A stretch of 64,000 nt of DNA from Botryllus schlosseri (lineage: Eukaryota), in NCBI GenBank assembly GCA_051294905.1, contig CM119373.1, positions 5,952,001-6,016,000 of the forward strand, read 5' to 3'. Of the stretch, positions 7,534 through 46,700 are shown piece by piece. The translations under genes were made by a program, and so were the position numbers. The notes beneath the pieces were generated by a model. That model searched no databases and was not told the origin of the DNA. It was given only the letters and a program-made list of their open reading frames with translations. Position 1 is the stretch's first letter. Each line of letters begins with the position of its first letter.

Positions 7534-10500
7534 TTAAGCGAATATCTCATTTCTTCTGACTGCACGAAGGTTGTAATCGACAATTGATCTAATGTTGACA
7601 CCAAATCCAAGTTTCAGAGGAGGTTTCTGAAATAAAAATGTGATTATATATTTTCAACTTAACACACACGTAATAATCCGCGGTAAAAATACTTCGGTAA
7701 AGTAGAGGAATCTCATGCGTTGTTACAAATCGTGTATTGTTAAAAACTTGATGGTCACTTGGAGTTATAAAAAAACTCATTCTCTGAGTTATTACTGAAG
7801 TTACCACGCTAATGCACATCGGGTAGGAGATACTTTGCAATCATGCTAATATGGATGCGGCTACTGCTGGCTCCATGCTTCGCACAAGGAGAATTTCGTT
7901 GCGCTGTAATCACAGCTGGGATCGGATTTTCAGTAGCTCAAACTCAAAACCAGTATAATATAAGAGTTTGGGAAAGGTTGATGCAGATAACAATCCCAGA
8001 AATAGCGGAGACATCGCACAATTTCTGAACACGCATTGAATTAACGTATTTACCAATTGACCAAAATAAAATTGAATTAGGGACCAACAAAGGTTTAATT
8101 TAAAGATTTATACATATACGCAGCATTACTCAAACAAAATTGAAGTCATAATACCGGCGTAGTTTCAGTAGGTTCGAAGGTGTATTGTCGTAGAAGATGA
8201 GCCATACTCAGTTTGATCTCCATCAGAGCGAATCGCATAGCGATGCAATTCCGTGGACCTCCGCCGAATGGTTGATAGACCATCGGGTCGATTTGGGTCA
8301 TATCACTCATCCTAACGATATAGAGAAGGCTATCTAGTGTCACTGAATCGAAAGGACAAACCATAGGTAAGACATCTCACCTTTCAGGATTGAAAACCTC
8401 AGGCTCATCCCAGTATTCTGGGTCGCGCGATAGAGCGAATGTGGGTACATTTATCGAAATTCCTTTCGGTATGGTTAGACCGTTGATCGTTGTCTGGCTT
8501 TCACAAATCCTAGCATTTCTGTTAGATCAGAACCCGAGGGTGGTGGTTGCTTCTAATATGTTAAGCCTTAGGTCTACTTACCTTAAAGTGGGATTGTAGA
8601 TTCTTAGCGTCTCGTTCACACACATCTCGAGCCATTTCATTTCGGCAATGGCTTCGTAATCCAATTTATCCTGATGCCAAAAAAGTTGAAATTGAAACGC
8701 GATAAAATCGATTCGTGAGATTGGCAATTACTTCCTGCGTGCTGTTACCTTTTTCGCATAGGTTTCGTCGATTTCTTCCTGGACTTTCCTTTGAACTTGA
8801 GGGTGTTGCGCCAAGTTATAGGCTAAGAAACTCAAAGTGTTGCCGGTATTCTCGAAGCCTGCCAGTATCATGAGCATTGCGTTTCCAAGGATCTCTTTCC
8901 TGTCCATGCCTGTTTGAACACTGAACAGTTGAGATGTTAGCTGTTATTCTGGAGACAAGTTCAGCCGGCTGTTAGAATATCATTTTCGAAAGACTTCTAT
9001 GTATTAACGTCGTTATGTTCAATATAGTTCTTGGGGTTACTGGCTGTAAGCAAGAAAATACTATAACATGTTACTCACTTAAGAACGAGTAGTTCTTTTA
9101 GACCAGGGGTGGGCAACTTGCCCTGCGGGCCGCATGGGGACCGCAACACTGTTTTGTGCGGCCCGCGAAAGCCTCAAAAAACGTTGTAAACTATTGATAA
9201 AATGTGTACTAAAAATCAAACTACTGTTGGTACTTGATTAAACTTTTTCTTAATATATTTCAACATGATAATGATAAGTTATATTCTTGTCATAGTAAGT
9301 ATATTTTTATTTTATCGATGGCGCAATAGCCCCGATCTCGCGGCGCATGCGTTTTGAAAGGTTTCTATTGCTAAACATCACAGAAACAGCAAGTGAAACG
9401 TAAATCACCTAATTTGTAGCACGAGAGTGATTTTAGATCGGCAACACGAGCAAGTTTATTACTTTTAGTGTTGTACTTAGAAAAACCGATTCGTTTGTTT
9501 CATAGATTCGTTCTTTGTTTGTGGAGTAGTACCGTATTTGCAATACAACGGCAATATTGAACTTCGGCGGGAAGTATTATATCGGCGCACTAATTAGAAA
9601 CTTTACTAATTGTGCCTCCCACCTTTCTCCAATTTATTTGACTTCGCTTCTTCTTTTGATATTTCGTTATCCAGCATCAGTTGCATCAGGTCAACCCGCC
9701 GTGTCTAAACATGAAATATCGATGAGATAACACCGACACCAACGATGTAGGAGATAGGTTGTATACGAAAGTTAGATCATCCCTGATATTTGCAACTTTC
9801 TTAGGCGAGAGATATTTTTTGCTTCTGATTACGTCATTGTGTCGATATAGATCGAATGTTTTAAAATGTATCCATAAATTTTGACAATTCTATACAATGT
9901 GAACTTGATCTGGTGACTTCGATCGAATTTGGTCTCTAACGTCTTCGGCAATCGTCAGCATTCATTTTATGTATTAATATCAACTACCAGTGATGTAAGC
10001 TCCCATTGCAATCTATCATAAGACACCATATAGTACTCACCGCATATAATTGAAAAGATTATGAAGTTGTGGATACTCTAATCAATGTATCAAGCCAAAA
10101 GGAAGCCTATTCTCGCCCACAAAAGTCAGGTTCTTATAAGATAAGATGAAAATGCGATGGAACCGTAAGATTAAAGACTCAGCACGACCTATCCTCCTGT
10201 TCACGCTTTTCCAGAAGCGCCACGTCTGCTATCGTTTTACAAAAGAGTATTCGTCTTACTATCAGGATGCTCTTACTTAATAAAAATAGAAAACATCTTG
10301 AACCTGCGATTTTGAGTCGGTTCTCCGTTCATTGATCACTTGACCAGCCAGAGATGTGAAGTAGTGTAGCGGCTCCTGCCCCAGTATCGAATAATTGAAG
10401 AACTCTAACACTCTTTCGAATGGCGGCCATAGGACTACAAATGAAAATTAAATGGTTGTAGGAGAAGCCTATATACAGGGTTGGTAAACTGTCCTTATTT

Positions 10501-13500
10501 CTACGAATTGACCTTCTTTTGATGTCTTAAAAATTTACGTTGTCCATATTATACATATTTCTAGGGTTAGTCATTATATCTTCTTTTTGTCCATGTTTAC
10601 CGAGTTCTGATGAAAACTATACGAAAGTGAGTTAGACAGACAGGCAGACTGGCAGAGTCGTGTGTTAGCCACACTCTCGAATTTAAATTTCCAGTTTTCA
10701 GAGTGTTAAACATCCCATTTACTAGTCTTTACCGACATGGTAATAATGTTACCATCCATGGTACTTGACAACGTTTGCCGGTAGAATCTTGTTTAGGCCA
10801 GGCCGTAACATCAAATTTTAGACCGAGCCTTGGCATGCTGCTATTAGAACCCCAAAACGTACAACAGAATACATGGATCCTGTGGGAATTGGCCTGACGT
10901 AATCGTTACGGGCGATAAAAATATTTTCAATTATTCGTAATCGATAGTTTGGCTGAAGTTTTTGGAAGCGCCACTAAAGTTAATGAGAGCCACCAGCAAG
11001 CAAATTCAATCAACTCTCCACTTCATAAAATTCACACTCACAGCACATCAAAATCAACGGATTGAAAAACGACATCTTGAATAGATTCTTCGTCTGTCTT
11101 GCAATTTCGGGTTCCTTTTCCGTGTCGTCTTGCGAATTAACATCGGTGCTGAATGCGGCAGAGCATATGATGTCTAGAGACAGTCGCGAAAATATCCTGC
11201 ATAGAAGTAAATATCGCAATAAATACCCTATATTCAACTGCAACTTTTATTAGACGTTAGGTACAGACACACCGACACTGTTGTCATTTAATATCCATGG
11301 TGTTTCGACATCAGAGATCAAAAAACACAAATAATGTCTTCAATTATTACTAGTTGCCGACTCACAGCACGGCCCAATTTTTTCTAGGCTTTTCTACGAC
11401 AACGATTACACGGATCAGCCTATAATTTTACCACCTTTTGCAGAGATTGTGAGGTCGAACTTCTTAGAAATGCCCCGTACAGTAGTATGGGGCATGGGTG
11501 GTGAAAGAAGTCGAAAACTCGTAAATCGTTATCGTTCAGGAGTAACATGGCCAATGATCATGGATATAGACTCAACAACCAGAAAACCAACAACAAGTAC
11601 GTACGTTTTGGAATTGAAGATTCCATCATTCGCTGCAATCTTCCTATCTAAAGCAGACGCGGCATTCTGCGCGCATCTGTCGAAAATGTAAATCATCTGC
11701 TTTAGTTTGGCTGTTGAAAATGTAGGAGTCAAAGACGATCTGATACGCTTCCACTGACTTCCTTCGACTGACGTCAATGCCAGTTTCATCTCTTCCCCGT
11801 TAATCTTCGCAAGTGCTCTCTGATAACGAAGAATTTCAGGCATATTTCTCTTGTCGGTAGCCTTTACTCGCGGGTCCTTGCCGGGACTAACACGAGGCAG
11901 AAAACAAATTTAAGCAACCATCTACCGCTATGTACACATTGTTACAGCATACACAAGGCATGTCACACAATAAATGCCGCAGGTCAATACTGGGGATTGT
12001 GCGCTGTGTCACGAGGATAATAACGGAATAGCCGCATTCCCGCAATGTTAGTTGCCACAGACTGTTTGGCTTTCTGTCATTGTTTGTAAATAGCAATCAA
12101 GATGTAATATTGCTTTGCAGTAAGAGACGATTCCTCCCAGGTCAAAGCATATATAACGAAAATCATTTGCTAAGCAAGTGCCGTTTGAATCGTAACCGTA
12201 CTCCCAGGCAAGCCTCTAATGGCATGGCCTCCATAGACGTACCTTGACAAAGTTTGGTGTGCTATGGGAATTTCCCTATTCCACACCAACGTCACTCGTT
12301 CCATACCATACCAAAAATCTTGATTATCATATCTGATACTTTTCAATACTTTAGAAGTTGCTCACAACCCGAGATACAATTGTAACTTTAATCTCTGTCC
12401 CATACCCGTGAATTCCCATTCCATACCATACTTCCTTTTTTTCAAATTCCATACTATGTCCTGGGGACTTGCATAAACCATACTGGATTTTCAAATTGCT
12501 CAACTAGAACTGGAACTAGAACTACAACTACTCACTTATCAAATCTCGCATATGGAACCAGAACCAGAACTATAAAGACTTCTACAATTCCGCAACCAAC
12601 TAACTAAAATACAACTGACCAGATTCAATTCCGATGCAACCTTTTAAATTTTATCGTATCGGAGTCGAAATGGCATTTCCCATGAACATCAGTACAAGTT
12701 TCAAACCGCAATGGTTTCGACTCCCAAAATGGCGGCAAGAACATCACACAACATATCATCGGTATCACGATTCATGCCAAACGACCACACGTGTTTTCAA
12801 TTCTTATTTTATTGCGTAACTGAGACTAGAACTTAAACTACTCAATTTTCAAAATACACAGCTAGAAACAGAACAAATCAAAATCCAGTCTTTATAGTTG
12901 ACCGTCAACAAACTAGGTTGGTAGTTCGTTATTATTTCAATTGGATCTGAACCTCCTCTTGCAAGTTAACGAAAAGAATCCGAATGCGCAATTCATATCA
13001 AGTGAACATGAACATAAATGTGGCTATACATTACCTGTCGCACTGAAAAAGACTGGAATTCCTTGATATATATTTGTCTCAGCATTTGCGGATCATGTAT
13101 GGTGATGCTCGGTGTTAAAAATGAGTACGCGCTGAAATACGGATTGATCTCCTGTGAAGCTAGACGAATTTAGTAGCAAAATAAGATTGCGGGAAGAGGT
13201 AACAATCAGAGTTTATGTAAAAACCAGTCATTCTTCAATCGTATACGTAAGATTTGTACAAGAACAATGAGCATTTGATAATTATGCAAGTTACTCACTG
13301 TAACATCTCAATTGAATATTGTCATGACTATTGATTGATGTGTAACTTTCGATAAAATCCATCGTAGTTACATGTTGCATTGTAGTGAAACACTACGTTG
13401 TTATGTAAGGCCTTAATTATATTTACCCCCATATTGGTCCATGCTTCTTCTTCATTTCATTATCATACGTAAAGGCCTTTTAAATGAAAAGAAATAATTG

Positions 13501-14801
13501 TAGAAATAAGGCAATGCAGCGTAAAGTAGGCATTTAATTCATTTCTACACAATACACTTCAATAAAATATCCTCACAGTGCATTTATTACAAACCATATG
13601 TATACAAGTTTAAGAACACTTACGTCTTTACCAAAAAGGCGACCCATGTGACCAAGTTGGAACAGAGTCGGCGGGTCGTGAGGTACATTGAGGTCTTTCA
13701 GAAACTGCCATTTCCGATGAACATAGTACCTGGACATGAAATACAGGCTTTCAGAATAATGGCGAATGTGATCTACGTGTTGGGAAAGGATCTTCTCGTA
13801 ATATGGCTATGATTTTCATGACCCTGGTAATCTGACTTACAGTATGGCATAATCCAAGGGTGGGCAATTATTTTTCCTCGCCAGACAAATGTGAAGCGAA
13901 AAATACGTTGGCGGCCCGAGACAAAGCTTGAACTATAATCTGCGGCATACAGTTTTATTTCTAAATTGAAAGCAGTGAATTATATCGTTAACACGTGCGG
14001 CAAAATGGACCTGTTAATATTAAGCTACGTCCCGAGCTATGTGTGACTTGGCCAAATAGCTTTTTCGCTTAATTCCGAAAATATATTCCGACTATTTCGT
14101 CCATGCAGTTGATACGACAATTCATCATACAAGGGATGTCAATATGTCCTAAAGCTACACTGAACTTTACAAATGTCAAAGTTTAAATGTAATTATTTTC
14201 TTAAATATGTTGCCTAGAATAGGGAGTGGTAAAACATAACCGCTTGAGTCTGTAGTACAAGCAGGTAAACATAATTTAGTACTCGAAAAAAGTCGAAGCA
14301 CTTCTTTTCTGGTTATATCAGTATCATATGCATGTAACATGTAACCGCACTTCCTTATAAGGCGGGTCATATTACTCGCACAAGTCGACGGCAATTAAAT
14401 AAACAGCAATCATGAAAACAACAGCATCCTGATAACGTGATTCAGGTATGACAATTCATTACACATCCTAATGATATTGATCGAAAGTGATTTCCATAAT
14501 AATCAATCAGATAACTCACTGAATTTACATTACTATTCATGTACTGTTCAGTAACATAGTAGAGCGTAATCTAATCTAGTGAAATGCTATTAGAACAGGG
14601 GTCGGCAGCCCCGGGCGCGCGTGCAAATTGTGGCACGCGAGAGAGAGTACCTAATCTGAACGCCAATCCGACCTAAATATACACAACAACACAACACAGT
14701 CTAATGCAAAATACGGTAATAAGTTCTTACCATATTAGAGCAATAAAGCTAATCATCAGAATCCAGGACTCCGGAGCTATCATATTTATGAACGCCCACA
14801 G
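7534..14801 (-). CDS. Cytochrome P450, clan 3 / CYP3A-like, copy B (13 exons; 514 aa from CTG 14801 or 508 aa from ATG 14783)
   Basis: Exons 14801-14731, 13729-13624, 13476-13427, 13131-13035, 11819-11605, 11196-11042, 10434-10304, 9704-9623, 8909-8749, 8670-8582, 8518-8381, 8311-8155, 7626-7534 (TAA); total 1545 nt, in frame. Motifs: WKRIR, RVDLMQLML, I-helix AGFENT, K-helix ETLR, PER, heme PFGGGPRNCIA. Confidence 0.93.
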
Positions 14802-19309: not shown

Positions 19310-19384
19310 TACATACACCCGATCTGTGCATATGAATACTACGAGTGTGTGCATGTGCATATGCTGCTGGACAAGGAAGGTGAA

Positions 19385-21738: not shown

Positions 21739-24700
21739 ATGTTAAATATTTGCGTGTGATAATTTGAGTACTAGGAGTCCAAAAGACCCTTTTGAATGAA
21801 GCTATACCAGAAGATTTGTTATCTCTACAACCTAATTATTTCAGTCGCCGCGTGGATGCGAATGGTGTTTCTCCCTTCGATCGCTTCGCCAGCCAATGGC
21901 TGACTTTGATTGTGGTCCTGCTTCAAACACGAAGATAGGATAGTATAATTGCAAGCTTAGTGCATTCTTCTCCAATTTCGCAGCCCAATATATCACTCAC
22001 ATCAATATCAATATTCCTGCATAAGAAGTAAAGGTGAACTTTTATTCAACATTCTTGGTCGAATTTTCTTTATTCCCTATTATGTAACAACGCTTATAAC
22101 TAGTAAGCTTATAAAGGTAGCCTTCAGTATACGAGAGTATTACGTATATATACGAAAATTGCGTATGTCCAACAGCTTGAGACAGTGCGTGTCCTTGAAT
22201 AACAAGGAATCGAATCGTTCAATACCGGCTACTTAACTACTTATTTGCAGTAGTGGGATTTCTTCTGACCGCACGAAGATCATAATCGACAATTGATCTA
22301 ATGCTGACACCAAACCCAAGTTCCAAAGGAGGTTTCTGGAATAAAAATAAATAACGATTTCCTAAAACGCTATAAAGTGTCCGTTACCAAATAATCGTGT
22401 ACAAGATTCAATTTGGTAACAGAAAATGCTGAATTCCTTAATGTATGCAGCATTGCACAAACAAATTTCAAGTCACATTACCGGCGTATTTTCAGTAGGT
22501 TCGAAGGTAAATTGCCGCAGAAGATGGGCCATACTCAGTTTGATCTCCATTAGAGCGAATCGCATAGCGATACAATTCCGCGGACCTCCACCGAATGGTT
22601 GATATACCATCGGGTCAATTTGGGTCATGTCACTCATCCTATAGGAAAACAGAACAGGTTAAATATTGTGACTGAATTCAAAATGCACGACCAGGTAAGA
22701 CATCTGACCTTTCTGGCTTGAAACGCTCAGGCTCATCCCAGTACTCGGGGTCGTGCGAAAGAGCGAATGTGGGTACATTGATCGACATCCCTTTCGGTAT
22801 GGTGAAACCGTTGATTGTTGTCTGGCTATCGCATACCCTAGAATTTCTGTTAAACCACAAGTTGAAAGCTATAGCAACGTAACAGCAATATATCAGCCGA
22901 TCTATATAAGCATCAATAAATTTCTTTGAAAAATTTCATGTTCAATACTTCCCCAAAAGATTCTACTTCATGTCTATATACGAAATAACTTTTAGCCCCC
23001 TTCAAGATTTATTAGAGTCTCCTCCCATGGCGATCTTAGGGTTGTTTGTGGTATTGGTGGTGCTATTAGAGACTAACTGGTCAGCCTTTATTGTGATATG
23101 GTATGGTTTCTGGCTCGTAAGCTTTTGCACTCATATGGTATGCATAGTCACAGATGGTGTGTATTTATATCATGAGTCGGTGTATATGCTGCAAACACAT
23201 CACGGACAAAAACATATAACGTCCTATTCCCATAGTTCCGGCTAATATAATACGGATAGGATCGATGCCTCTGTTACAATTTTGGTTTTGACTTACCTCA
23301 AAATGGGATTGTAGATTCTTAACGTCTCGTTTACACACATCTCGAGATATTTCATTTCGGTTATCGCTTCGTAATCAAATTGGCCCTGACGGGAAAGCGA
23401 TATATTGAATTTCTGACATTACTAGCTGCGTGTTGTTACCTTTTTCGCATAGGTTTCGTCGATTTCTTTTTGGACTTTCTCTTGAACTTCTGGGTGTTGC
23501 GCCAAGTTATAGGCTAAGAAGCTCAATGTGTTCCCGGTATTCTCGAAGCCCGCCAGTATCATGAGCATTGAGTTTCCAAGTATCTCGTTATACGGTCCAT
23601 ACCTGTTCGAAAGATTGATATGTTTACTGCGAAACTAATTACCCTGTATATATCTCTGGTTATTAGATTATTTAGACCAGGGCCCGAATCTGAATATTAG
23701 TGGCAACTGACGATCCATGTCTAACACATAAAAATGAATGCATTTTCATATCAGTATGCTACGTTTCTACAGGCATGTATGACATAGATAATGCGCCGAT
23801 ATCAGATGTACGGAATGTGCTCTATAAAACATGACTGGCACACGCGATTTCAAATTGGTGCATATGCAATATTTTTTGTGTCCGCTGCATCTGTACTGTA
23901 TTTCTACTACTGTCTACTCAGATTGAAATGACGGGACTGTTCGGAGACGAGTATTTCGACGACCAGGCATATCAAGATCGAAAGTTTTGGCCAACCGCCA
24001 ACGGACAAGGTTTTATCGCCGTCCATCTTTTTTGCAGCCCTCTTTGCTCAATGCTCAGTCATATCTCGGCAAAACCGTCATGCATTCATGTTTCCTGGCG
24101 CGGAACGGATCTGCCCCGACATACCTGTATCGCAAAGTCTCGCACCGCCTCGTTCCACACCACTACACCTCCCAACGGTCGGCAATAGAGTTTTCCAGAG
24201 AAAACAATGTCGGACAAGTCTTATCATGACATCAAATGCATTTGTGTAATACAATATAGGGCAATGCACATTTTCATGATCAAGCCATATTGTCGTTGCC
24301 ACTTTGCTGCGTGTCTTACTTAGATACAACAGTAACCAACACAGTGACTTCGGATATATGAAAAGTATCCACAGAAAAGCACGCGAAGCGCGAAGAAATT
24401 TTATGTTGCAAGAAACTCAAGAAATATTAGATACATATTTAAATATCGTATGGTGTCGGCGGGACCTACAATTATACCCTTCACGGCCCACGTTTGGGTC
24501 GCGACCACTACTCTAAGAATTCATGCTGTATAGAAAATGGCGTGGAGAGAAGATTAGACGGATATCGAAATATATTTGACGAAATCATGGCCGCCGAAAA
24601 ATGCTTGACCGGTAAATATAAAAGAAATTTCATGAGAAGCTATACTTAGTTGAGTGCAATTCATTGCTTCCGATGCAGCCCAAAACCTTTGGGTAACTGG

Positions 24701-27114: not shown

Positions 27115-27510
27115 ATGCCTGGACTTGACTTGAGCCAATCTGTGTATTGACTGGACTTGAACTCAAGTCATTGCGCATGACTCGGACCAAGTCATATGAC
27201 TCGAGACTCAGACGGCCAAGACTGCCATGTCAATGTAATTTCGAAGAATAGTAAGTTGAACACAATATTGTTATATCTCATCTATTGGTACTGGTAGCCC
27301 TACTTGAAAATGTTCAAAGTGAGGAAAATTAGTATATTAGAAATGCGACCCATTCGATATCACCAAGCAGAGTTATAAAAAGTGGGTTTAACAAGATTTT
27401 AACTAGAAACAGAGTAGTCAACGCAATGACTTTGACTCGGACTACTCGAGTCACAATACCATGACTCGGACTCGACCCCCTGCTCGCTGACTTGGAATCG
27501 GACTAGACTA
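27115..27510. mobile_element. Truncated GACTC/GACTT-array hAT element
   Basis: Co-linear with the interior of 49652-50161 (caagtcatatgactcgagactc..., tcgatatcaccaa.cagagttataaaaagtgg); ends abruptly at a TAGGGTTGTCATACGTCC-type TIR at ~27509. Confidence 0.7.
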
Positions 27511-28624
27511 GGGTTGTCATACGTCCGGAATTTCCCGGACATGTCCGGAATTTCACTGAAAAAACTGCGTCCGGGAGAAAATTCTAAATTATGCCTAAAT
27601 GTCCGTAATTTTGAAGACTTGAAGTAGGTTCAAAAGTTTTTCCCAACTAAATCAACATAAACAATAATATGTTCGAGCAGATTTATTCTATTCGAAATTT
27701 TTCGTCGCACTGCGCGCAAGTTAATGCAACGTATAATGATATTAGTATGGACAACAGGCACCGCCCTCGCAAAAAGCACAATCAAAAATCAATATAAACT
27801 ACCATCATTTACTGAAATAAGTCTAATTGTAATCGCAATTACAAGCTAACGGTATATTTCTAAAGTTGGTTAAGGCCGATTGGATGCTTCAGTCACATAA
27901 AGTGATTTCAAATCTTGGGGTCGTTTGCCTTTATCTGGGGCTCGCTAAGATGATGGACGTAATCAGCTTCCAAAATAGGCCGTGAGTAAGTTTGGCAAGC
28001 TTAATTTTTATAGTAATCAGTTTATCAAGTTTTGAGCTGGGCCACGGAACATTTTCAAGTTGGAAATGAGGTCGCGACCATAAAAGTTTGGAAATCACCA
28101 GAAGTGGAACCTGCTGGAGCATTTTATAGTAGCCTGATGTAAGGAAGAATCAATATTATTGACAAAATTCAACAATCAGATGCATAGTAGCCTAAGTGCT
28201 CAAGAAGTTACATCGATTACCCTATGGTGGGCTCAAGATCAGTGCTTTTTTGAGTGGAAGGAGGCTGATAAATTTTGTTTCGGACCTGGTAAAAATATAC
28301 AACCAGATAGCCGCACCGACCTAGCAGTATAGCAGGGCTATTAAACACAGTCCCGACAGGCCAGTCACGGCCCTCCAGACGATTTCATCCGCCCGTGATG
28401 AAATCTATTGCAGACCCTAGCAAGCAGCAATCCCCAGAGCTCACATTACAGATGGCCCAATTCATGACCTATGTTCCACTCCATTCCTGTTTGCAGTTGA
28501 TGGGCTATGCTTTGCTAGTGCGACGTCATGTTGACAGTCAACTTGTCATACCTCATGTTAAGTTCGCTAGTGGGCGCTATAGAGTATCCGGAATTTGCTT
28601 CACGCAAATATGATAACCGTAGAC

Positions 28625-30178
28625 CAGGGGTCGGCAAGCTTTCGCTAGTCATGGGCCAAATTTCGAGTGTACAACTTTTTGGCGGCCGGAATTTTTCATA
28701 TTACTATATTTTACGCTTACTTCGGTATATTATCCAAGATTGCTGCAATCTCAATCATACCAATCATAAAGCAAATGTATTAACACTTCAACAACGCAGA
28801 ATAAATGTGACAATTGACGCAGCATGCTTTGTGACAGGTTTTCAACTTCTGGTAACAAGTCAGATGAAGCAAGAATCACGTCCGAAACATGTGATCTTAG
28901 ATGCATGAATTTTATTGTTCAAAACTATGGCTCACATACGTACGTGCTACCAAAAATCGATGCAATGTCTTTTGCATCGTTGGACAAGCTGGGATAAAGA
29001 TCAATTTCAAGAACGTACTCTTTGTCAAAGTCATGCAGCGATATGCTCTTTGTATGAAATTTGCCATTCAATTCACCTGCATCGCATTTCAAAAAGGCCC
29101 ATTTGTAATTTTCAGGCAATGGTATTGGCGTCCACATTAAATGGAGTACTGAATAGTCAAAAAATTATATTGTATAGAAGGAATGTCGGAGAAGCGGGTG
29201 AATATTAAGTAATTAAATTTCGTATCACAGTTACAAATATAGTGTTGGTACTAGGTTTTCTCTCCTCCAGTGTAGGAAAGTGAGCATAATTTTGTTCGTA
29301 CATTCCCCGAGTCGCAGATTTGTTTCGAATGCGCCTCAACATCGTATGTATTCAGTTGTTTTTCCCTACAAGTTGCAAATTCAATTTTTTCAGATGTGAC
29401 GTTAAACGAACCGCAAGATTAGATACCCATTTACGATTACAAGAGTATGAGTCGGCAATATCTGTATTTTCGAGAAAAGTTGCTATTTAATTTCTCAGTT
29501 CATAGACTCGTGCAAGCATAGCTGCTCGACTTAATGCGCGAACATGGCAGATATGCATTACATCGCCATATTGATTCTATGCTTCTAGCAATATCTGGTG
29601 TAACAATGTTGGTGATTCAGTTTGTGAGACAAAATCATATTAACAGTTTTCATCATTGTGGCCAAAACACTTCAGGTTTATTGTCTTGTCGCACAATGCC
29701 TTGTCGTGAATTAAACTACGGATAACTAACCTATACGGAGGCTAGTTATCTGTAATTAAACTGTCAGTATAAGTTTGAGTTTTGTCATTGCTTCTGAGAT
29801 GTTACAAGCGTTTTTGAAGCAGAGGAAGGACACCTTTATTTTCACACCCCATCGGTACACCCTTTAAAAAGCATGATACACCTTCGGTTGCGAGATGCGC
29901 CCGATTGATAAGCACTGATCTAGTCTACTCCATACAGACAATCTCCATCTCCTAATTCAAACGCCTTCGTTTAATAGCGTAACAATAGACTAATACGGCG
30001 TAGGCAACTTATATCGTAGCAACGCCGCATTCTTTCCAAGCAGTGCTGCACTGCAGATTGAATCTCATTGTGAAATGGTGGGTCGTATTATCGTGATAAC
30101 TAATTATTATGTCGCGGGCCGGACGATTTCGTTTGGCGGGCCGGATCCGGCCCGCGGGCCGTAGGTTGCCGACCCTTG
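28625..30178 (-). mobile_element. hAT (Buster/Charlie-like) element with decayed transposase dimerisation-domain remnant (intron 4 of copy C)
   Basis: TIR CAGGGGTCGGCAA / TTGCCGACCCTTG; TSD-like CCGTAGAC / CCTTAGAA. ORF 28925-29137 ends YPSLSNDAKDIASIFGSTYVCE, the FGSTYxCE motif of Buster/SPIN-type transposases. Confidence 0.75.
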
Positions 30179-31582
30179 CCTTAGAATATAATATTCCGTA
30201 ACTACGCATACTCATTATTGCATATGACTGCTCTTATCGTCATTAAAAAAGATAACCGAACAAAATGCTAATGCGCGATTCATGTCGAGTAGGTAATGCC
30301 AATAAGACTACATTACCTGTCGCACGGAAAAGGACTGGAATTCTTTGATAAATATTTGTCTCAGCATTTGCGGATCATGTATCGTGATGCTTGGCGATAA
30401 AAATGAGTACGAACTGAAATAGGAATTGTTCTCGTGTAGAGCTAAAGAAATTCAGTAGCAAAATGCGACTGTGAGCATACCAAATTGAATATGGTTCAAA
30501 GGTTTAATACAATAGTAGATGCCGTAGGACAATAAAAAAAGTCCACGTATTGCTCAGTGTGATAACTTTCATTGCCAAATTGATTTATTATTCTTATCGC
30601 TATAGAAGTCGTAATTGGTAGTAGTTAATGCAAAATTAACCAGATTCATTTTGTTATGTTTATGGATATAATGTCCTTGATAGTAAAGAAACTGGGCAAC
30701 ATACGGAATACGCAAATCTCTTATATTTGGAATGACCGATATACCGTCACCCAAACCCACAAGTACCAGAGACGTGAATCGCGCGAAGCGCGAAATTTTT
30801 TTATGTTTTACGGAATCGAGTCTAAAATATTCTTGAATCGGTCGTAATATAAGATTTATTAAAATTTGATATTTAGAATTGTTCCCCTCCTATCGCTTTG
30901 TAACGTGCCTCGTGATTGTGGTTCTGATGCGATAAGAGTAAGGTTTGAGATTGATATTGAAGAGGATTCTGAATTTGATAGTATAAATGCTCAGACCAAA
31001 GTAACGTATAGTGACTTGTAAAATTGCAGCCAGATCAATGCAAGAATCATAGAATCTGGAGACACGTGACGTTGGCCCGTTTTATTCCGAAAGCCTGTAT
31101 CGAGCAGGCTTAGTTGTACCGAATATAATGCGAAATATAAATATAAACACAAATCTCGCTTCATCGAATTGTACATTCAATAATTTTCCGATCCACTGAA
31201 GCTTCTCGCGTACCAACAATTTCAAATACTTACCGAGATTTTTGGTCAACACCAAAATTGGAAGGTAACATAACAAATGTGAGCTAGATTCATGGGGGAC
31301 CCACCTGGCATATTTTATTCATTAAAATTTAATTCCTATGTGTCGAAACTAGAAATTACTTGACGCAAACAATTTTGAATTTGGGTGTTTTTAATTACTA
31401 ATTCAGAAAAGAAGAAGTAAGATCATAATTTGAAAAGTTGCGATGATGCAAAAAAATGATAATTAATGTGGCCGAACTTAGCGCCCCAACAAACAAAAGT
31501 GGAATCAGAAAAAGAAACCAATATAATTACTCTTACTTGCTATGATCAATGTATAACATTCAGGTCTTTCCATTGTTATAAT

Positions 31583-32088
31583 TAGGGTTGCATTTAAAAC
31601 AAACGTTCGTCTAAAACACTTTATTTAAAACATGTTTCAAACAATGCTTTAAACATCGGCTTAAAAATAGTTGTATAATTATGCCATATTGTGTAAATAC
31701 TTTCCAAAACATGAATGATGTGCCTACGGACGATTTACACTCGGCATAGAGGACGTATACGATATGGAATGGTTGGAACCCTCGAGATAGTAGGCTCAAC
31801 AGCTATAGCATACGTAGATATAAATCATTGATGCGGAATGTATGCTCTGATGATGATGAGCGCTGACCGTAAAATGCTGCATGACGATGTAGTTATGGCT
31901 AAGAATATTTTTGGTCCATATATGACAGAGGTTTGAAGCCCTTTTTGTCAAAGAAGCTATATCTACCGTAAATTTTCAATTGCCAACGTGAATCTATTAG
32001 GACGCCACATTTGAATATTAATAAAATAAAAGCATGTTTTAAACAAGGGTCTTGTTTTAAATAGATGTTCGTTTTAAATGCAACCCTA
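31583..32088. mobile_element. hAT MITE (TIR TAGGGTTGCATTTAAAAC), uninterrupted 506-bp copy
   Basis: Matching TIRs and a perfect 8-bp TSD GTTATAAT. Confidence 0.9.
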
Positions 32089-33033
32089 GTTATAATATAT
32101 GTTGCATCGTACCGTAAAATCGTATCAGGTACTTTACATATGTTTGAAATTAATTCTATTTACCCCCAAATTGGTCCATGCTTTTTCTTCATTTTGTTGT
32201 CATACGAAAAGGCCTTTGAAATGAAAAGGAATATATCATTATAGAATCTTGACATCATACTTTGAAGCATGCGCAATTGCCTATGCATCATTTCCAACCA
32301 TAAATAAGAATAAATTCCGCTGTCCAACCGACTATTGCTATGTGTACCAAAACTTACGTCTTTGCCAAAAAGAAGACGCAGATGACCAAATTGGAACAGA
32401 GTCGGCGCGTCGTGAGGAATGTTGAGGTCCTTCAGAACCTGCCATTTTCGATGAACGAAGTACCTGTACGTAGAAGAAACACGGTCTATGATTATTCTAT
32501 TCAAAATAATGTGGAATCGCGAGTGCCGTGTTGAGGAAAGATCATTTCACAGCACTATCTTCATTTTTTCTCCAGCTACTATATGACATCTTTGTCAATT
32601 TAGTTACGAAATTTCACTTCTTTGCAGAGGCGGAGGCGCATGTAATGAGGTCATCCCTCTTTTGGCGACACGATTGTATTATAATCATCAAATTGTAAAC
32701 GGTCTCTTTGAGTAAATTGCAAGCCGTTCACACTGCACTAATTGCAATTGAATAATATTGCTGACTGTTGTGATCTCGTCTGGGTAATTGCAATTTCGAT
32801 ACTAACGATTACGTGACGCAGCGATGGGCTCGTCATAAAAGAGTTGAGAATTACGCCTATATGACGCGACGCCTATCATGTGCCGATGCTGAAATTGAGA
32901 TATAATTGAACTGGGACCGCAACAATATCATTTCGGTGTTGAAGATATTTATTCCCGTCACCGCACATTGTCAATTCTCTTGAGCACCCCGTAATTCATA
33001 CGAACATTCGACATACGCGCATGCACAGTGTGT

Positions 33034-33060
33034 ACACACACACACACACACACACACACA
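33034..33060. repeat. (AC)n microsatellite just inside intron 1 of copy C
   Basis: Direct reading: uninterrupted AC dinucleotide run. Confidence 0.95.
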
Positions 33061-33989
33061 GAGACAGACAATCTGCTGTAGAATGCATAAATTACTATAC
33101 TTACCATGTTAGTGCAAAAAAGCTAATCACCAGAATCCACGTCTCAAGCGATATCATATTTATGAGCGCCCACATTTTCAGACGTATCGTAATTGGTAAA
33201 ACCTTAAAATAACTGATAATTATAGCACCTGTTGCCGACGGTCGAGGTGCGTGTGATAAGGCACACATGAAGTTTGAAGGTCTCGATTAAAAATATGAAA
33301 TGCACTTAAACTGATCTTCAGTCGTTGCCAATCCGGATAGGACTGTTGGGGGCACCCCATATATGCATAAAATTAAAATTAAAGAAGTTACGTCAGCTGG
33401 GCAGATAGTCGGCGGGCTTTGATCCACGAACCGGTTTTATGTTTGCGCGTGGAGTGGTTGAATAGCGATAATGGGCTGCTTTGTTCTACTTTAAAAGACC
33501 CTCCCGTGACAGTTGTCTTAATAGATATGACTATAGCTCATTTGCTAGTTATTCATGAAATGAGATATTTTCATCTGTACAGCTCACTCCGTGGCAGGTG
33601 ATCCAGCAACTTTTTATCAGTCAAAAGAAGTACTGGTAGTTCATGAGCAAAATCGCAGTGAAACTGATGGTAACATTTCAATTTTGTTATATTTTTTATA
33701 ACAGCTGACAATGCGGTAACAGTGCTTGCTCTCCTCAGTTTTCTGCAGTATCCCATCTATGTCAAACATAAAGCGATTTGCAAATTGTTTCGGATATGTG
33801 CTTATTTGTTTATTTTTCGTCAATTCGACAACTCCAGCACCTCCTCACGGCTTAACGCGTCATACTACAACACGGACACCAGACAACAATATTTAGAGAC
33901 AGTCATCACACATTATTCCTGCAAGTCCCTATATTGATCTAAGCCACTATGGTACGTATTTCCGTCGTCGACTCAGAGACAATGAACAT

Positions 33990-35604: not shown

Positions 35605-35998
35605 CATGGCACACAGAAATAATGTGTCAATATTGATTTTACATTCAATCATCTAGTCTGGTGGAGTTGACAGGTTTGAACATCCAAAATGACAAAGTGA
35701 GACGAAACAGCTGCCAAAAATAGATCACCGAGTTCAAATTGTTCACTTTCAGACGTCGACTATATGTACCGTCGCTTTGGTAATATTCGTTTTTCTGCTA
35801 TCCAAACCCGGATTGCCCACTGTATGAACTGCAGATCTGCACATTATTTCTAGTGGGCCGAACAAATCTATATTCGCCGCAAATGACGTATACGGATAGT
35901 TGCGGCACAAAATCTGTTTTAAATTTACCTAGTGAATAAATATGTAATTTAGTGAATCAGCCTTCTTTTATCAATTGTGACATGAGTTCAATTTAGAA

Positions 35999-38214: not shown

Positions 38215-39822
38215 TTTATTCATGTATGTACATAAAATATCAATAATTTCATAAAGAAAATCATTCCCCTTCATCGGGTCATCTCGTCTCAGCCGTCGCC
38301 GAATTTGGATTTGTAGTCGAGGTCGTAGCCGCTCGGTTCGTCTCATCTCGCTGTAGTCGATGTAAATTTGTAGTCGTGGTCGTAGTAGGAGCCGCCGGTA
38401 TCTGGCGCTCGTTTGCGTTTGTGGATTGGGTTGGGTGCTGGGTATTCGGTGCGGAGTGGTGGTGGGGTTTGGGAGGTGGGGGTTAGATGGGTTAGGGAAG
38501 GGTTTAGGGGGTGGGTAGAGTGGGATTGGATGGGAGGTTAGAGTGGTTGGGATATGTTGTGGGTGGATTGGTTGGGTTTTGTGGGTCGATAAATATGATA
38601 CGATTTATCTCGTTTTGTCTGTGCGTTCAGTGGGCTCGCTTAAATTTTTCGGTATATTTTACTTCTTATATCATTGATGCGTTGGTCAATATTTTGGGCG
38701 TATTCATTTTGGATGTCGAGTGCATTTTTCCATTCCCACACAAGGGTTTTCACGTTCATAAAGGCTTTTATTATGGTCGGAGCTTGCGGTCCGTCGTATA
38801 CGCTGCGCATTATCTCGTCGGGTGTAGCGTCGATAGTCGTTTGCAGGTCGTTCTCGAGATCCTGTATTACAAGAGAGAACAGTTTTTTGTAAGTTGCACA
38901 TTCGGCGAAGGTATGGCGCAAAGTATCTTCTGCATGTTGGCAGAATTTGCATTTGTTTTTCAGGTAGGCGTCTTTTCTTCGTATCCATCCAGCGTTGGTT
39001 TTTCTGGAGCCTGTAAAGTAGCTCTCAGTGTTGATGCGATACGAGATCTCGCGTTGCTTGTTGTCAATGTGATCTTTGATATTGGGTTGGTATAGCCATA
39101 TCTGTTTCCAGTCCGACATTCGGTTTCCTCCTTGTTGCGTCTTCTTTTTAACAAGGATCTGGTACATTTCTTTCTGGCTTAGTTCTTGTACCTCTTGTGA
39201 TTGGCTTTTGATTACGTCAAAAATTTCCTTTTCCTTCCTCCATTCCTTCGTCAAGGTATTTCTGTGAGGGTAGAGGTTGTTGTATAAATTGCAATTTATA
39301 TCTCTCACCCTCGTTGTCAAATTGTATATTGCTTCAGCGTGCCAGATATCAATCGGGCTCTCAAGTCGGCTTAGTTGTTGTAGCCTTTTTGCTCTCTTTG
39401 CGTGTGTGGCGGATTCAATATCTGGCATGTCGATCCCTCCTTCTGGCTTGGGTTTGATCAGTTTCATTCTGCCCCTTTGCTCGAGTTTTTCAGGGCTCCA
39501 CAGTAGGCTGAAGACGAGGCGTTCAAATTGCTTGAGCTTGTCGTCTGGAATCTGCTTGTTAGCATATGTATACGTTATTTTGCTAATTATGTATGCCCTA
39601 ATGGCCGTTATTTTACCAATCCAGGAAAGCCGTTTTGATTTAATATGCCTTACGCTCTTTTCAGCTCCTTGCCAGAGTCTGTCAAAGTTCATTTGCAGTT
39701 CGCTTTCACCGTGGTATAAGCCCAGCCCCAATTGGGTGGGTTGGGATGCGGCTGTAACGGTCCTAACTGTTAGCAGGCCTAATACGGAACCAATTGCAGA
39801 GCTGGTGCGAAATGGGTTGTGA
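38215..39822 (-). mobile_element. 5'-truncated non-LTR retrotransposon (L1/Tx1-like): ORF2 C-terminus plus 3' UTR
   Basis: Open 363-aa frame 38640-39731 with LSWIGKITAIRAYIISKITY, KPEGGIDMPDI and the CCHC-type finger CKFCQHAEDTLRHTFAEC. C-rich 3' UTR and an AATAAA near 38215-38220. Confidence 0.85.
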
Positions 39823-40790: not shown

Positions 40791-43700
40791 TTATTCAGTT
40801 CTTGAATTTCTTCTGATCGCGCGAAGATCATAATCCACCATTGATCGAACGCTGATACCAAACCCAAGTTTCGAAGGAGGTTTCTGCAATAAAAATAGAA
40901 TGTGGAACTTTTAACTTATTACGCACGAGATAATGCGTAGGATTTATAATGTTTGATGCGCACTGGAAATCATACGCAAATGTGTCTGGTGGAGTAGGGT
41001 GGGAAGGGATGCTTTCACTCCCAAAACATGAGGACTCAACATTGTGCCGACTTATTGTTCGTAAATTCGACTTGTATCGCGTCTTTCCCATTTGACTTCG
41101 TAGTATATCACGTGGTGACTTTACATTATTTAACCAATTACCCTTGTCCGGATTATCCATCGCACGCAGTTTCGGAATTTAAAGTAACATTTTTACATAT
41201 ATTAGGCTACCTTGTAAAAGATCATAATCTCGCGATGCAAGATATCAACATTAGTGGTAATGATCACTCTACTATTCAATATTACTAATAATGATTTAAA
41301 AATTTCGCCCGTCGCATATTTTCACCGAAGTGGCGCTATTTGTACATGAGAACGACAAATTTTTTAATCCTTCTAATAACGGTGCGGAATCTGCTCTTCC
41401 CTTACTGTGGACTTTAGGGTTGTCAAAAATTTAGAAGTTTTCAAAGTTCTGCATTGTAATGTCTTATTATGTACATTAGTGATAAAAAAATCAATGAGAT
41501 TGGAATATGCCCACAGGAAAAGCGTTATTATTTCGCGCAAAACTTTTGAAAGTAGCTACCGAAGAGTGGCCGTGCTATCGACGAGAAAACCAGCAAGCAC
41601 GAAATTATACCTTTTTATTCGCCAATCTGATATGCTTCAATGACCACCACGGCGTCTTGCTGATCAGGTGCTTCTATTTGTTCACGAAGTGTGATAACGG
41701 CAGTGATTCGGTAAGCGCATTGTAGGCTTGTGAGTTAGGGCAATTTTTGCAACTTTTTTACAGCTTCCGGCAGCTTCCAAATACTCGGAAATCGTGTAGT
41801 ATGATTTTTAAGCTGTTTGGAGGATTATCATATTGTAGGGTTTCCATACGTCCTCTTTTAGGAGGATTTGTCCTCCTTTTCGCGGGTTTTTGAAAATGTC
41901 TTCCGAGGACGCCTAAATGTCCTCCTTGATCTTGGTCTTGGCCTTGGTTATATTTATAGCAAAATTCGACTGAGATGCCGTAAATCAGACCGAAGTGACG
42001 GCGGGTATTTCGGGAGCTGAGTAAAAAGTATTTTTTTAGTCAACCGCCCGACAGCTGTGAAGGTAAGACTGTATTTTGGGCAATGAGCGAGAAAGTTGAC
42101 CATTTTTTTAGTCAAACACCTGATAAATTGAAGGAAAACTGTATTTTGGTCACTGAACGAGAAAGTTGACCTTTGATTTTTTGATTTTTCGTGAAACATT
42201 TTGCAACTTTTTTCGATTTTTCATGGAAATTTTTTACAGCTTTTTTCGATTTTTCATGCAACTAACTTTTTACTGGAAATATTTGCCACTAAATAGATCG
42301 CTTGATTATTTCACTGTCGTTCAAATTGAGGACATTTCTGATTTGACGTACATTCCAGTGTTGGGATGACTCGAGTCAACTTTTGGTATGACTTGACTTG
42401 ACTCGGCGCTTCAAAAGTGCAGATTGAGCAAAATTTACGAGTCAATTTCCAGTCATCAAGTTCTTTAAATCACTGTATTTTGTGCATGTTCGGATTGTGA
42501 GAGTAACCAGTCATTCACTGATTGTACGTTTCACTGCTCCTCTATTCCTATTGTTACAGCTCAAATAAATTGACCTCAAACGAAATGATCACAACGTTGT
42601 AGTAGTATCAGTATATTAATATAATAGCAACGTATGTATGTTTGTTAGACGGCCCAGTCCTTTCATTGCGCCGTGATCACCTTTATCAACCCTCTTGTAT
42701 GATTTAAATCGGGCGAATATAGTTTATGAGTTTATATTCTCACTTATGCTATGTGTAGATGGGTAGTGTATTGTACCATATCAATTTGCTTCAACTTCTC
42801 GAGGCTCGTATTCGATCCTCTTGGCTGATAATAACAGACTCTAGCATGTAGCTAATAGCGAAACAGTTACACACGCACATTGTTTGCAGTTCGACGTGTG
42901 CGTGAACGATACAACGCCTTATTCTTGCATGCATATTCAACTTTATATTCGTTATTTAATTCAAAATAAATGGTCTTTCACACAGCTAGCAAAATGTAAT
43001 GACTTTGAATTTGAATTGTCATTGATAATTCAAAAATTGAGTTTGACTTGAATTGTGACTTGACGCGTGACTCGACTTGACTTGACTTGACTCGAGTCAC
43101 CTTCGAAAATTGATTGACTTGACTTGACTCGAGTCAAAATCTACAATGGCTCGAGATGACTCGTAGCTCAAAGGTAGTGACTTGATCCCAACACTGGTAC
43201 ATTGAGGCTAGACCGCCGAAAATTATAATTTCACTGGGTCAATTTTTCCAGGCAATTGATTTTGTTGAGGTCGCCAACACCGAGTTTTGCTACACTGCCT
43301 TGGATACGAATCGATTCAAGTATCTCATAACCTAATAATTTCAAGAAACTTGTCTATAAATCCAACTTTCCATGGATTTGACTGCAACAAAAACCTGCCC
43401 TAGTTAATAGTAAAATTTGACACCAGGTGATTGAATGTTTCAGTTGTAAGAATAATTGATGATAAAAGTCTGGACTGGATATTGAATACTTGTTTGTTTG
43501 TTTGTTTTGGGGTATTTATGGTGTTTGTCGACTACTATGGTCATTTACACCATGCCGATATTCTTCATATTTTCCGTAACTGCCGACTTATAGCACTGCC
43601 CACCTCTAGGCTTTTGTAACACGCCGCTGACGTGGATGAGGTGGCGAGGAGGAGCCTAGGTAAACCTCCAACACTTAGGTAACGGAATTTGGAAGTCGAC

Positions 43701-46700
43701 CTCGGTCGGACTCGAACGCGCACCCATTGGTGTTGCAGCCGCGGATCACACCACTGCGCTATGTCGCCATATATTGAATACTTCGTATGGCGGTTATCAC
43801 AACTAAGGATTCAAGGTATTTCAACCTCAGGGTACAAACTTTGTTCAAACCCAGCAATATCAGACTTCTAGAGCACATGACGTCAATATCAGATCAGACG
43901 GCGCAGAGAACTTATGCTTTCTAAACACGTTATGAAATAACCCGTATTAATTTATCGCATTAAGAATTGATTGATTCATGCAGCAGTGCTAAACCAATTT
44001 TTAGTCGCAGTACCGGTGTATTTGCAGTAGGTTCGAAGGTAAATTGCCGTAGAAGATGCGCCATGCTCAGCTTGATCTCAATCAGGGCAAATCGCGTAGC
44101 GATGCAATTTCGTGGACCTCCGCCAAACGGTTAATATACCATTGGGTCAATCTGGGTCATGTCACTCATCCTAGGAAAATAGGGTAAGCTTTATATTGTG
44201 ATTGAATTTAAAGGGCACGGCCCGGTTAATTACGTAACCTTTCAGGCTTGAAAAGGTCAGGCTCATCCCAATATTCTGGGTCGTGCGATAGAGCGAATGT
44301 AGGTATATTGATCGTCACTCCTCTTGGTATGGTGAAGCCGTTGATCGTTGTCTGACTGCCGCATATTCTAGTATTCCTGTAAAAACAAACTTTGAAAGAT
44401 GCAGGGACATATCATCAATTTTCCATGAACATAAAATATACCACGCTGATATTTGGCTCCCATAGTTTGACCCCCATCCTCGGCGGGTCATTTTATCACT
44501 ACCCTTTTGTTATACTATAGTTACAGATACACACATTATATTGTAACCTACACCATCCATGTTCAATTTGTCATGTTACCCTGATAGGAGTAACTGAATA
44601 GGTTACAAAATGAACACGTTTTTTGGAATGCAGTAATTGTAGCTCTGGAAAGGATGGGTCGCGCTGAGATTGTCTGCACGATTTACCTCAAAATGGTAAT
44701 TTATTCCGTTTCCGCCATTATTCATGTACACTGTTATTGGTCGTGGCGCAAAAGGCCGTCAGGCGATAAGCGCCTTCCTTTATGTTTAATAAACAAAAAC
44801 CTCAAAATGGGATTGTAGATTCTTATTACAGTTTTGTTCACAGATATCTCAAGTTATTTCATTTCGGTTGTGGTTTCATCATCAAATTTGCTTTGGCAGG
44901 ACAACCTTTGTAGTTTGCATGCGACATATTAGATTCGTTAGATTGTCAGCTATGTGTGTTGTCACCTTTCTCGCATAGATTTCGTCGACAAAAACATCGT
45001 GGAAAAAATATATAACGCTATATTCCCATAGTTCCGGCTACGTAGAGGGTCGATGCCGAGTTAAAGATTCTGGTTTTGACTTACCTCAAAATGGGATTGT
45101 AGATTCTTAACGTCTCGTTCACACACATCTCCAGATATTTCATTTCGGTTATGGCTTCGTAATCGAATTCGCCCTAACGGGAAACAGGTGAAGTTGATAT
45201 GCGATATATTGAATTTCTGAGATTGCTAGATTTGTGTTGTCACCTTTTTCGCATAGGTTTCGTCGACTTCTTCCTGGACTTTCTTTTGAACTTGTGGGTG
45301 TTGCGCCAAGTTGTAGGCTAAGAAACTCAAGGCGTTCCCGGTATTCTCGAAGCCTGCTAGTATCATGAGCATTGAGTTTCCAAGGATCTCGTTCCGGTCC
45401 ATGCCTGTTTGAACAGTTGGGATGTTCAATGGGAACCTGAGCGGCCTATATGTGGTATCGTCTGGAGACAGAATAAGACGGATATCGTAATATAATTGAT
45501 GAAAAACATAGGCGTAATAACATAGGCAGTCGATAAATGCTTGATGCTACTGACTGGTCAGTAAACATAAAATAAATGTCATCGAATGCGGATATCGGAA
45601 TATATAGTTAACGTAACCCTTATGTATATTATGCGAATGCGCTCAAAATAATCGTTATTGTTCCCGACACTTGCGGCAAGTAAAGGTATTAGAATATCAT
45701 CAATCGCAACGTAGATGAGTAGGACTATACAAGTCCGTCCTTCCGATGCAGCCTAAGACTTTTCAAGTAAACATATCTGAAGCGTGCAGTTTGATCTGTA
45801 CTCAAAAATACCAAGTTTTAAAGGGTAATTTGCGAGGGGCGTCTCATATGTTTTCATGCCAATCTAAATAGATATTAGACTGATGCCTTAGATATTACGA
45901 AATGCGTGCATAATTTGCTAATGCAGATTTTGATTATTGCGACGTCTCCATACTAGGCACTATTCGTAACTTCTGCACTAAACAATCGTGGGGTGTCTTA
46001 TAATGGCGCACGGGAACGACACATGAGATTTGACGATTGTGTATCCCACCTTTCTCCAATTTATTGGACTTCGCCTCTTTTGCTGATATTTCGTTGTCCA
46101 GCATCAGTTGCATCAGGTCAACCCGCCGTGTCTAAACGAAAAGTCGATGAGATGATGTTTATATTTACTAACACTAGTCGTTTATGAGAAAAGGGTGGGT
46201 AGAAAAGTGATGTTAAAAACTTAAATTAATTATCCAACATTTCGCCATCTTGCTTCTAAGAAGTCCTCCAAATTTGTGTGCAGCAGATATCAAGAGAGAA
46301 CACTAGAGAACAATATACCTAGTCTGTGGTAAATTCGGCCGAATTATGTCAGCAAGTCCTTTGGGATCGCCTGCCGTCATTTATTATGAGAAGACTAAAT
46401 CAACGGTGACGTTGATTACGTACAGTGTTAGAAGGCAGCCAATTCTTGCCTACACATTTGAGATGGTTATAGACGATGAAGATGGGACGGAAGCACCACC
46501 CTATCTCCTATCCAGGCTATGCTGGAGGGCCGAGCGCCTATCAGAGTTGAAGCGGATAACATCCGTTAGCCTATTCCAAAATGAGTCATTAGTATGAGTC
46601 AAGTATTGCAATCACTTTCTTATTTGATAGCTTATTGAAACCAACACCAACCTTATAATTGTATATTAATTCCAGACATACGAAGCGAACAAGAAATAAC

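Follow-up and report, generated by a model that had tools for sequence, protein, structure and literature searches.

Introduction

The I-helix threonine (Thr) is among the most cited catalytic residues of cytochrome P450 (P450) monooxygenases, and natural P450s which carry asparagine (Asn) in its place are known, namely the bacterial enzymes P450cin (CYP176A1), OxyB, and RufM, as well as annelid CYP39. Here we analyze four tandem CYP3-like P450 genes (A, B, C, and D) of the ascidian Botryllus schlosseri, located in a stretch of 64,000 nucleotides (GenBank assembly GCA_051294905.1, contig CM119373.1, positions 5,952,001 to 6,016,000 of the forward strand). This whole stretch is called the window, and its first nucleotide is position 1 of the coordinates given below. 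At least three of these genes encode Asn at the Thr position, and they belong to an ascidian CYP3-like subfamily which is the new element here. A literature search found no paper on an Asn-type CYP3-like subfamily in ascidians, nor any joining ascidian, P450, I-helix, and threonine.

The presence of Asn at this place in P450cin, mentioned in the preliminary description of the window, is confirmed by the literature, which shows that this Asn binds the substrate and sets selectivity, and that a hydrogen-bonding residue there is not required for activity (PMC13439498; PMC10465960). In both P450cin and RufM, restoring the Thr almost abolishes activity (PMC13439498; PMC10465960), and the Asn tunes selectivity or sequential oxidation (PMC13439498). 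The Asn of OxyB hydrogen-bonds the I-helix backbone as Thr does (PMC13439498; PMC10465960), and annelid CYP39 has Asn at the Thr place in the motif ASLANA (PMC4229089). All these bacterial enzymes have Asn directly after the I-helix acid residue, as in the window, and P450cin and RufM oxidize substrates; nevertheless, these soluble enzymes each serve a single biosynthetic or catabolic purpose and are not closely related in sequence to the window genes. Moreover, the Asn of these bacterial enzymes contacts a specific substrate or controls sequential oxidation, for which no counterpart is known in the Asn subfamily. The same Thr-to-Asn change was also made in a eukaryote-like class II P450, P450 BM3, where T268N keeps its hydrogen bonds but bonds the axial water directly (PMC11900375). 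T268N is a laboratory mutant with lowered turnover and coupling, whereas the Asn described here is natural, old, and conserved.

Position of the I-helix asparagine

The motif AGFENT had been noticed in three copies, with Asn replacing the conserved I-helix Thr. Translation places the AGFENT codons exactly at the positions listed in Table 1, and at each of the three sites, in copies B, C, and D, the minus strand encodes ILAGFENTGN. In copy B, the minus strand at 8749-8910 translates to ...MLMILAGFENTGNTLSFLAYNLAQHP..., and the exon surrounding AGFENT is GMDRKEILGNAMLMILAGFENTGNTLSFLAYNLAQHPQVQRKVQEEIDETYAKK, of which C and D have close variants. Copy C (minus strand, 23440-23601) reads as MLMILAGFENTGNTLSFLAYNLAQHP except for one change, and copy D (minus strand, 45244-45405) translates to ...AGFENTGNALSF.... 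The Asn codon is AAT in both B and D, whose proteins are 82% identical.

The I-helix exons of the three copies each match Pfam PF00067 at profile positions 258-307. When PDB sequences were searched with phmmer, the best matches of the exon were CYP3A4, CYP3A7, and CYP3A5, and the alignment with residues 273-318 of CYP3A4 is gapless (AGFENTGNTLSF over AGYETTSSVLSF). In this register, the Glu corresponds to E308, the Asn to T309, and the following Thr to T310, in agreement with the register and the replacement proposed in the preliminary description. A check proposed there, whether the next Thr takes the catalytic position, was run on the same alignment, which speaks against the Thr of E-N-T as the catalytic residue, since it is set on T310, and this T310-equivalent Thr is itself at least 90% conserved in the family. 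Compared with the canonical monooxygenase motif [A/G]-G-x-[D/E]-T-[T/S], the acid residue and the next Thr are thus present, and only the Thr directly after the acid is replaced.

B, C, and D are paralogues, so that their Asn residues do not amount to three independent observations. The same Asn is found in about two dozen further copies of the genome and in other species, and is therefore neither due to chance nor to a sequencing slip.

Similarity to CYP3A

Apart from the Asn, the sequence and the predicted fold are those of a canonical CYP3A. Scores against PF00067 (cut-off 22.8 bits) are 43-47 bits for each of B exons 9, 11, and 12 and for the I-helix exons of C and D; B exon 5 is just under the cut-off with 20 bits, and the homologues carry PF00067. 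B, C, and D all contain the K-helix ETLR (ExxR) and the meander PE[VRL]F[NK]PER. B combines an N-terminal hydrophobic anchor, WxxxR, ETLR, PEVFNPER, the acid residue, and the second Thr with a heme loop free of insertions. This loop reads FGGGPRNCIA in A, B, C, and D, including the Cys, and follows the superfamily loop FxxGxRxCxG except that the final Gly is Ala. Indeed, the strict pattern with a terminal Gly has no match in the window, and a looser pattern shows the loop ending in Ala, a conservative variant also recorded in CYPome surveys (PMC8110760). The length of the loop is that found in 55 CYP3-type sequences (invariant F449, G450, G452, R454, C456, and G458).

For the homologue search, the structure model, and the PDB comparison, we used as a proxy P0003, an Asn-type protein 58% identical to B. 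Against PDB sequences, P0003 matches CYP3A4 with an E-value of 1e-93, the next family being CYP46A1 (1e-36). Its AlphaFold model, built from a 56-sequence alignment and lacking heme and side-chain geometry, has a mean predicted local distance difference test score of 92.4 and a continuous I-helix from 308 to 339 that runs through N325. The nearest folds are human CYP3A5, CYP3A4, and CYP3A7, with template modelling (TM) scores of 0.89-0.94 when normalized by the solved chain, and the sequences of these human enzymes are 32-35% identical over the model. Together with the placement beside vertebrate CYP3A in the tree described below, these E-values and TM scores bear out the assignment of the window genes to the CYP3-like P450s of clan 3.

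The window genes also resemble vertebrate CYP3A and Ciona 'CYP3-like' genes in their 13 exons, membrane anchor, ExxR, PERF, and heme loop FGxGPRNCI[GA], and in their tandem clusters with birth-and-death turnover; they differ from them in the Asn at the Thr309 equivalent and in the Ala ending the heme loop. When 13 Asn rows of the alignment are compared with 65 Thr rows, four columns separate the groups, and the only absolute one is the Thr-to-Asn column itself (13/13 N versus 0/65 N). As nothing beyond this single residue is diagnostic of the clade, the change of function proposed earlier, from CYP3A-type detoxification to sterol-type or endoperoxide chemistry, is unsupported.

Animal P450s without the canonical Thr include CYP5A1, which is also of clan 3, CYP7A1, CYP8A1, and CYP39. 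The I-helix of CYP5A1 reads E-I-I-T-N-T-L-S-F, with hydrophobic residues replacing both Thr, and CYP5A1 and the clan-7 P450s generally lack the acid residue or both Thr, whereas the Asn subfamily retains E/D and the second Thr. The NTLSF continuation, which had been taken as an echo of CYP5A1, turned out to be uninformative, since many clan-3 proteins of the ordinary ETT type have it as well, for example in echidna (ETTSNTLSF) and coral (ETTSNTLSY). CYP5A1 and the clan-7 P450s are moreover of the stable, endogenous-substrate type (Thomas 2007, PMC1866355), whereas the Asn subfamily has multiplied by the dozen: the genome holds at least 30 related I-helix exons, with tandem clusters and pseudogenes.

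These features make it very improbable that the subfamily consists of peroxide or endoperoxide isomerases of the thromboxane synthase, prostacyclin synthase, or CYP74 type, which would rearrange a molecule like prostaglandin H2 or a fatty-acid hydroperoxide without O2 or a redox partner, the I-helix Asn contacting the peroxide. The absence of the catalytic Thr would fit such a function, and prostacyclin synthase and the CYP74 allene oxide synthase place an Asn over the heme. Class III P450s, which rearrange peroxides with neither O2 nor electron donors or redox partners, have a remodelled I-helix groove and other remodelled catalytic regions (PMC10813956). No remodelling of this kind, as in the oxygen-binding region and heme loop of CYP74 and CYP8A1, is seen in the Asn subfamily, whose heme loop has a normal length and which retains the acid residue and the second Thr. 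In both sequence and fold, CYP3A is closest, and not CYP8A or CYP74. The NTLSF likeness to CYP5A1 is shared with ETT-type clan-3 proteins, and the many, unstable copies of this family contrast with the phylogenetic stability of vertebrate enzymes that have endogenous substrates (PMC1866355).

Distribution and origin of the asparagine

The I-helix exon has 36 matches in the 495-Mb genome. The best 30 of these are spread over five contigs, mostly in clusters, and comprise 22 exons with [D/E]-N-T or [D/E]-N-S, one with E-N-V, four with E-T-T, and three in which no motif was read. Of the 23 genome copies that carry Asn, 14 use the codon AAC and 9 use AAT, in exons down to about 46% identity with B. 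These counts are of I-helix exons, and gene integrity was followed for the window copies. The 'expanded family' of the preliminary description holds for the genome, but the window cluster is mostly decaying.

Styela clava has the closest named proteins (about 58% identity). The homologues of P0003 that carry Asn include seven proteins of Styela clava, annotated 'CYP3A-like', and five proteins derived from transcripts of other samples, whereas among these homologues Thr is found in Ciona, Phallusia, and Clavelina proteins (with Ser in one Clavelina protein) and in all vertebrate, sea urchin, and mollusc proteins. Separate cases of Asn are an amphioxus protein (E-N-S), one unassigned tunicate-clade protein (E-N-S), and a Lingula protein (R-N-T). 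In two Asn-type proteins, P0154 of Styela clava (AGYQNT) and P0251 of Lingula (AGFRNT), the acid residue is lost too. If any members have left the ordinary proton-relay chemistry, these two would be the best candidates.

A maximum-likelihood tree unites the tunicate proteins in one clade (100*), with vertebrate CYP3A as its sister group; this tree does not include CYP5A1, and the placement in clan 3 is thus relative to sequences other than CYP5A1. A starred sub-clade contains all 13 ascidian Asn rows and nine Thr rows. Forcing the Asn rows into one clade costs 2.8 log-likelihood units (approximately unbiased test, p 0.42), so that a single origin is not rejected. A second tree, to which rough models of further genome copies assembled from tblastn pieces were added, includes a Thr-type copy at 7.918 Mb (G000:C3:7912301-7932300, L035+L036) with the motif AGYETTGG and a Thr codon ACC. 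This copy nests within the Asn clade (98*, 97*, 96*), and its starred nesting indicates a reversal. The heme loop of the reverted copy is FGARPRNCIA, in which Arg replaces a conserved Gly, and this copy may therefore be degenerate. Two other loci, L016 and L019, also carry the ETTGG motif.

The ratio of nonsynonymous to synonymous substitution rates (dN/dS) among B, C, and D is 0.16-0.21, at a synonymous divergence (dS) of 0.43-0.49. Given this ratio, the 23 genome copies with both Asn codons, and the proteins of Styela clava and of other samples, the description of a lineage-specific subfamily under selection stands, as an ascidian clade under purifying selection. The same data bear on whether the Asn was simply tolerated, that is, a nearly neutral or mildly harmful change without functional meaning, fixed once and inherited by a partly decaying family, which we hold to be quite improbable. 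Three of the four window copies are broken, Asn replaced Thr independently in the amphioxus, unassigned tunicate-clade, and Lingula proteins, one lineage returned to Thr, and the I-helix is the least conserved of four motifs in CYPome surveys (PMC4229089; PMC8110760), all of which would suit a tolerated change. Nevertheless, a residue without function would hardly be expected in so many copies, at such low exon identity, with both codons in use and in other species, nor with a dN/dS of about 0.2, and the lineage that reverted may itself be degenerate.

What emerges is a whole, actively duplicating branch of chordate CYP3 that has long carried Asn under purifying selection, beside Thr-type sister genes in the same genomes. 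These Asn and Thr sister genes, together with the one reversal, provide matched natural pairs for the role of this residue in a CYP3A-type active site.

Some of the genome copies are themselves paired. On G000:C3, I-helix exons encoding identical proteins are found at 6.39-6.41 and 7.28-7.30 Mb, and again at 6.73-6.75 and 8.55-8.57 Mb. The paired loci (L006/L007, L011/L012, L008/L009, and L016/L019) have constant offsets of about 0.887 Mb and about 1.822 Mb, and at least one of the exon pairs differs at the Asn codon (AAC versus AAT). This arrangement points to large segmental duplications or to uncollapsed haplotypes carrying whole P450 clusters. Weaker I-helix matches at G000:C13:24283274, C14:8038659, and C10:6731619 (including L027 and L028) lie inside open frames of 328-580 amino acids. 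Unlike the 13-exon genes of the window, these P450 genes are intron-poor or intronless, and they could be retrogenes or members of another clan.

Predicted activity of the subfamily

Vertebrate P450s with endogenous substrates are phylogenetically stable, whereas those in unstable tandem clusters, in which genes are often gained and lost, are xenobiotic detoxifiers (Thomas 2007, PMC1866355). The tandem expansion of the Asn subfamily, with its pseudogenes, follows the xenobiotic pattern and not that of single-copy synthases like CYP5A1 or CYP7A1, and by this analogy argues for the ordinary role. We therefore consider it probable, judging from sequence, that the intact members are membrane-anchored monooxygenases which require O2 and NADPH-P450 reductase and in which Asn takes over the hydrogen bonding from Thr; their substrates would presumably be environmental or dietary chemicals. 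A shift to dedicated endogenous chemistry, as suggested earlier, finds no support in unstable tandem arrays, fresh pseudogenes, and a window cluster in which three of four copies are broken (cf. PMC1866355).

We propose that in the ancestor of the ascidian-specific subfamily, the Thr309 equivalent would have become Asn through a single base change, and that the subfamily would then have grown through local duplication. The carboxamide of Asn may stand in for the hydroxyl of Thr as the hydrogen-bonding group of the I-helix groove, bonding to the backbone carbonyl at i-4 and to the water network that lies over the heme. The retained Glu would keep the proton relay. On this model, Asn probably alters spin-state behaviour, coupling, or substrate orientation rather than the reaction class. 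Asn is compatible with oxygenase chemistry yet not neutral, and a family that keeps it must therefore be adapted to it.

Several points weigh against this assignment. Three of the four window copies are broken, and B has lost the ancestral ATG. In P450 BM3, turnover, coupling, and the stability of the oxyferrous form are all reduced by T268N, and the substrate-induced spin shift is almost lost (PMC11900375); since the change is harmful in this canonical P450, the swap is not neutral, and adaptation or altered chemistry is implied. The tree and the PDB comparison were made without CYP5A1, which has no PDB entry among the matches, and the structure model is that of a 58%-identical relative, heme-free and without side-chain geometry. 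Monooxygenase activity is itself a prediction for this subfamily.

Altered chemistry could take the form of a changed oxygen activation within the monooxygenase frame, serving a specialized ascidian pathway rather than broad detoxification, for example in sterol, oxylipin, or natural-product tailoring. Protons would then be delivered via a substrate hydroxyl or carbonyl, as in EryF, or hydroperoxo-iron reactions or sequential oxidations would be favoured. We regard this, the main rival, as unlikely, although it has points in its favour: Asn is strictly kept in the clade while its codons turn over synonymously, the harm done by engineered T268N means that the family must have adapted (PMC11900375), and Asn is mechanistically specific in P450cin and RufM, as shown by the near loss of activity when Thr is restored (PMC13439498). 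On the other hand, no other active-site column co-varies with Asn, a dedicated biosynthetic step would not be expected to involve dozens of paralogues, along with pseudogenes, in unstable tandem arrays, and one lineage within the clade returned to Thr. We give little credence to the stronger form of this proposal, in which the whole subfamily, dozens strong, would activate oxygen differently, in a substrate-assisted or hydroperoxo- or peroxide-driven manner, to act for instance on oxylipins or on natural products, whether dietary or the animal's own. If true, it would be an animal parallel to the bacterial P450cin, OxyB, and RufM, and a natural escape from the Thr requirement within the CYP3 lineage.

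If instead, as we consider probable, these enzymes are ordinary oxygenases, the Asn subfamily is mainly a caution against inferring function from a single I-helix motif. The subfamily also bears on the handling of foreign chemicals by sea squirts, common fouling and invasive animals to which, among invertebrates, the vertebrates are most closely related.

Gene models and state of the window copies

All four P450 genes of the window are encoded by the minus strand, and each comprises 13 exons separated by GT-AG introns (Table 1). They were mapped with P0003, a 511-amino-acid open frame on a 1,704-nucleotide transcript contig, which is the closest full-length relative found using the I-helix exon; gene A was located by tblastn with P0003 and with B. 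One of the four copies, B, is likely functional, and C, D, and A are broken.

Table 1 Positions of the P450 genes and of other features in the window
Feature	Position	Strand	Description
Gene A	1..5969	-	Exons 1-7; exon 1 at 5969-5898, exon 7 at ~2348-2199; continues past the window start
Gene B	7534..14801	-	13-exon CYP3-like P450; the one window copy that is intact; length 516 codons (from CTG) or 510 codons (from in-frame ATG)
B exon 12 (heme-binding loop FGGGPRNCIA)	8155..8311	-	Cys codon 8245-8247; final motif residue Ala instead of Gly
B exon 9 (I-helix)	8749..8909	-	AGFENT 8845-8862; Asn codon AAT 8848-8850
B start region	14781..14801	-	CTG at 14799-14801 (ancestral initiator position); next in-frame ATG 14781-14783 (codon 7)
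Gene C	22237..33175	-	Pseudogene; AGFENT 23536-23553
363-amino-acid open frame	38640..39731	-	Between genes C and D; Pfam PF13966 (reverse-transcriptase zinc-binding), weak, E 1.4e-4, below curated cut-off
Gene D	40791..53674	-	13 clean exons and a nonsense codon; AGFENT 45340-45357; Asn codon AAT 45343-45345

In gene B, every junction is GT-AG and there are no internal stops. Transcript contigs from three studies reproduce ten of its junctions base for base, and six of these ten are also found in raw RNA-seq reads of a fourth study, so that B is transcribed and spliced as modelled. Its I-helix exon is spliced on both sides in RNA, with joints 8669/8748 and 8908/9622. The first codon is ATG in copies C and D but CTG in B, and the codon-7 ATG of B is still upstream of the hydrophobic anchor.

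The defects of C and D were read from the assembled genome sequence, those of C by exon-by-exon blastn against D, translation from canonical splice sites, and a junction search. Gene C has an insertion of one nucleotide in exon 7 (near 26076), which leads to three stops in exon 8, and, at the 5' end of the I-helix exon (exon 9), an insertion of two nucleotides (near 23590). In gene D, the codon at 44131-44133, 9 codons upstream of the heme Cys, is TAA instead of the CAA (Gln) of B and C; this stop may be a segregating null allele. Exons 8 and 10-13 of gene A were found in the adjoining 20 kb, whereas exon 9, the I-helix exon, was not found by tblastn (E up to 100) or blastn in the 7.2 kb between exons 8 and 10, and skipping this 161-nucleotide exon would shift the frame. 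The low dN/dS at the dS given above indicates that the defects of the window copies are recent relative to the duplications.

Other features of the window lie between or within these genes. The open frame between C and D is probably a remnant of a retroelement without long terminal repeats, and it sits in a G+C-richer, AT-skewed stretch (36-40 kb) outside the P450 genes. In intron 8 of gene B, the summed contig depth at 9100-9299 is about 445 in one RNA-like run (X12), compared with 10-25 on exons, and this intron probably holds a repeat or an element with transcription of its own. In gene D, the last intron (40883-44014) measures 3.1 kb, versus 0.53 kb in B and 0.15 kb in C, which indicates an insertion there.

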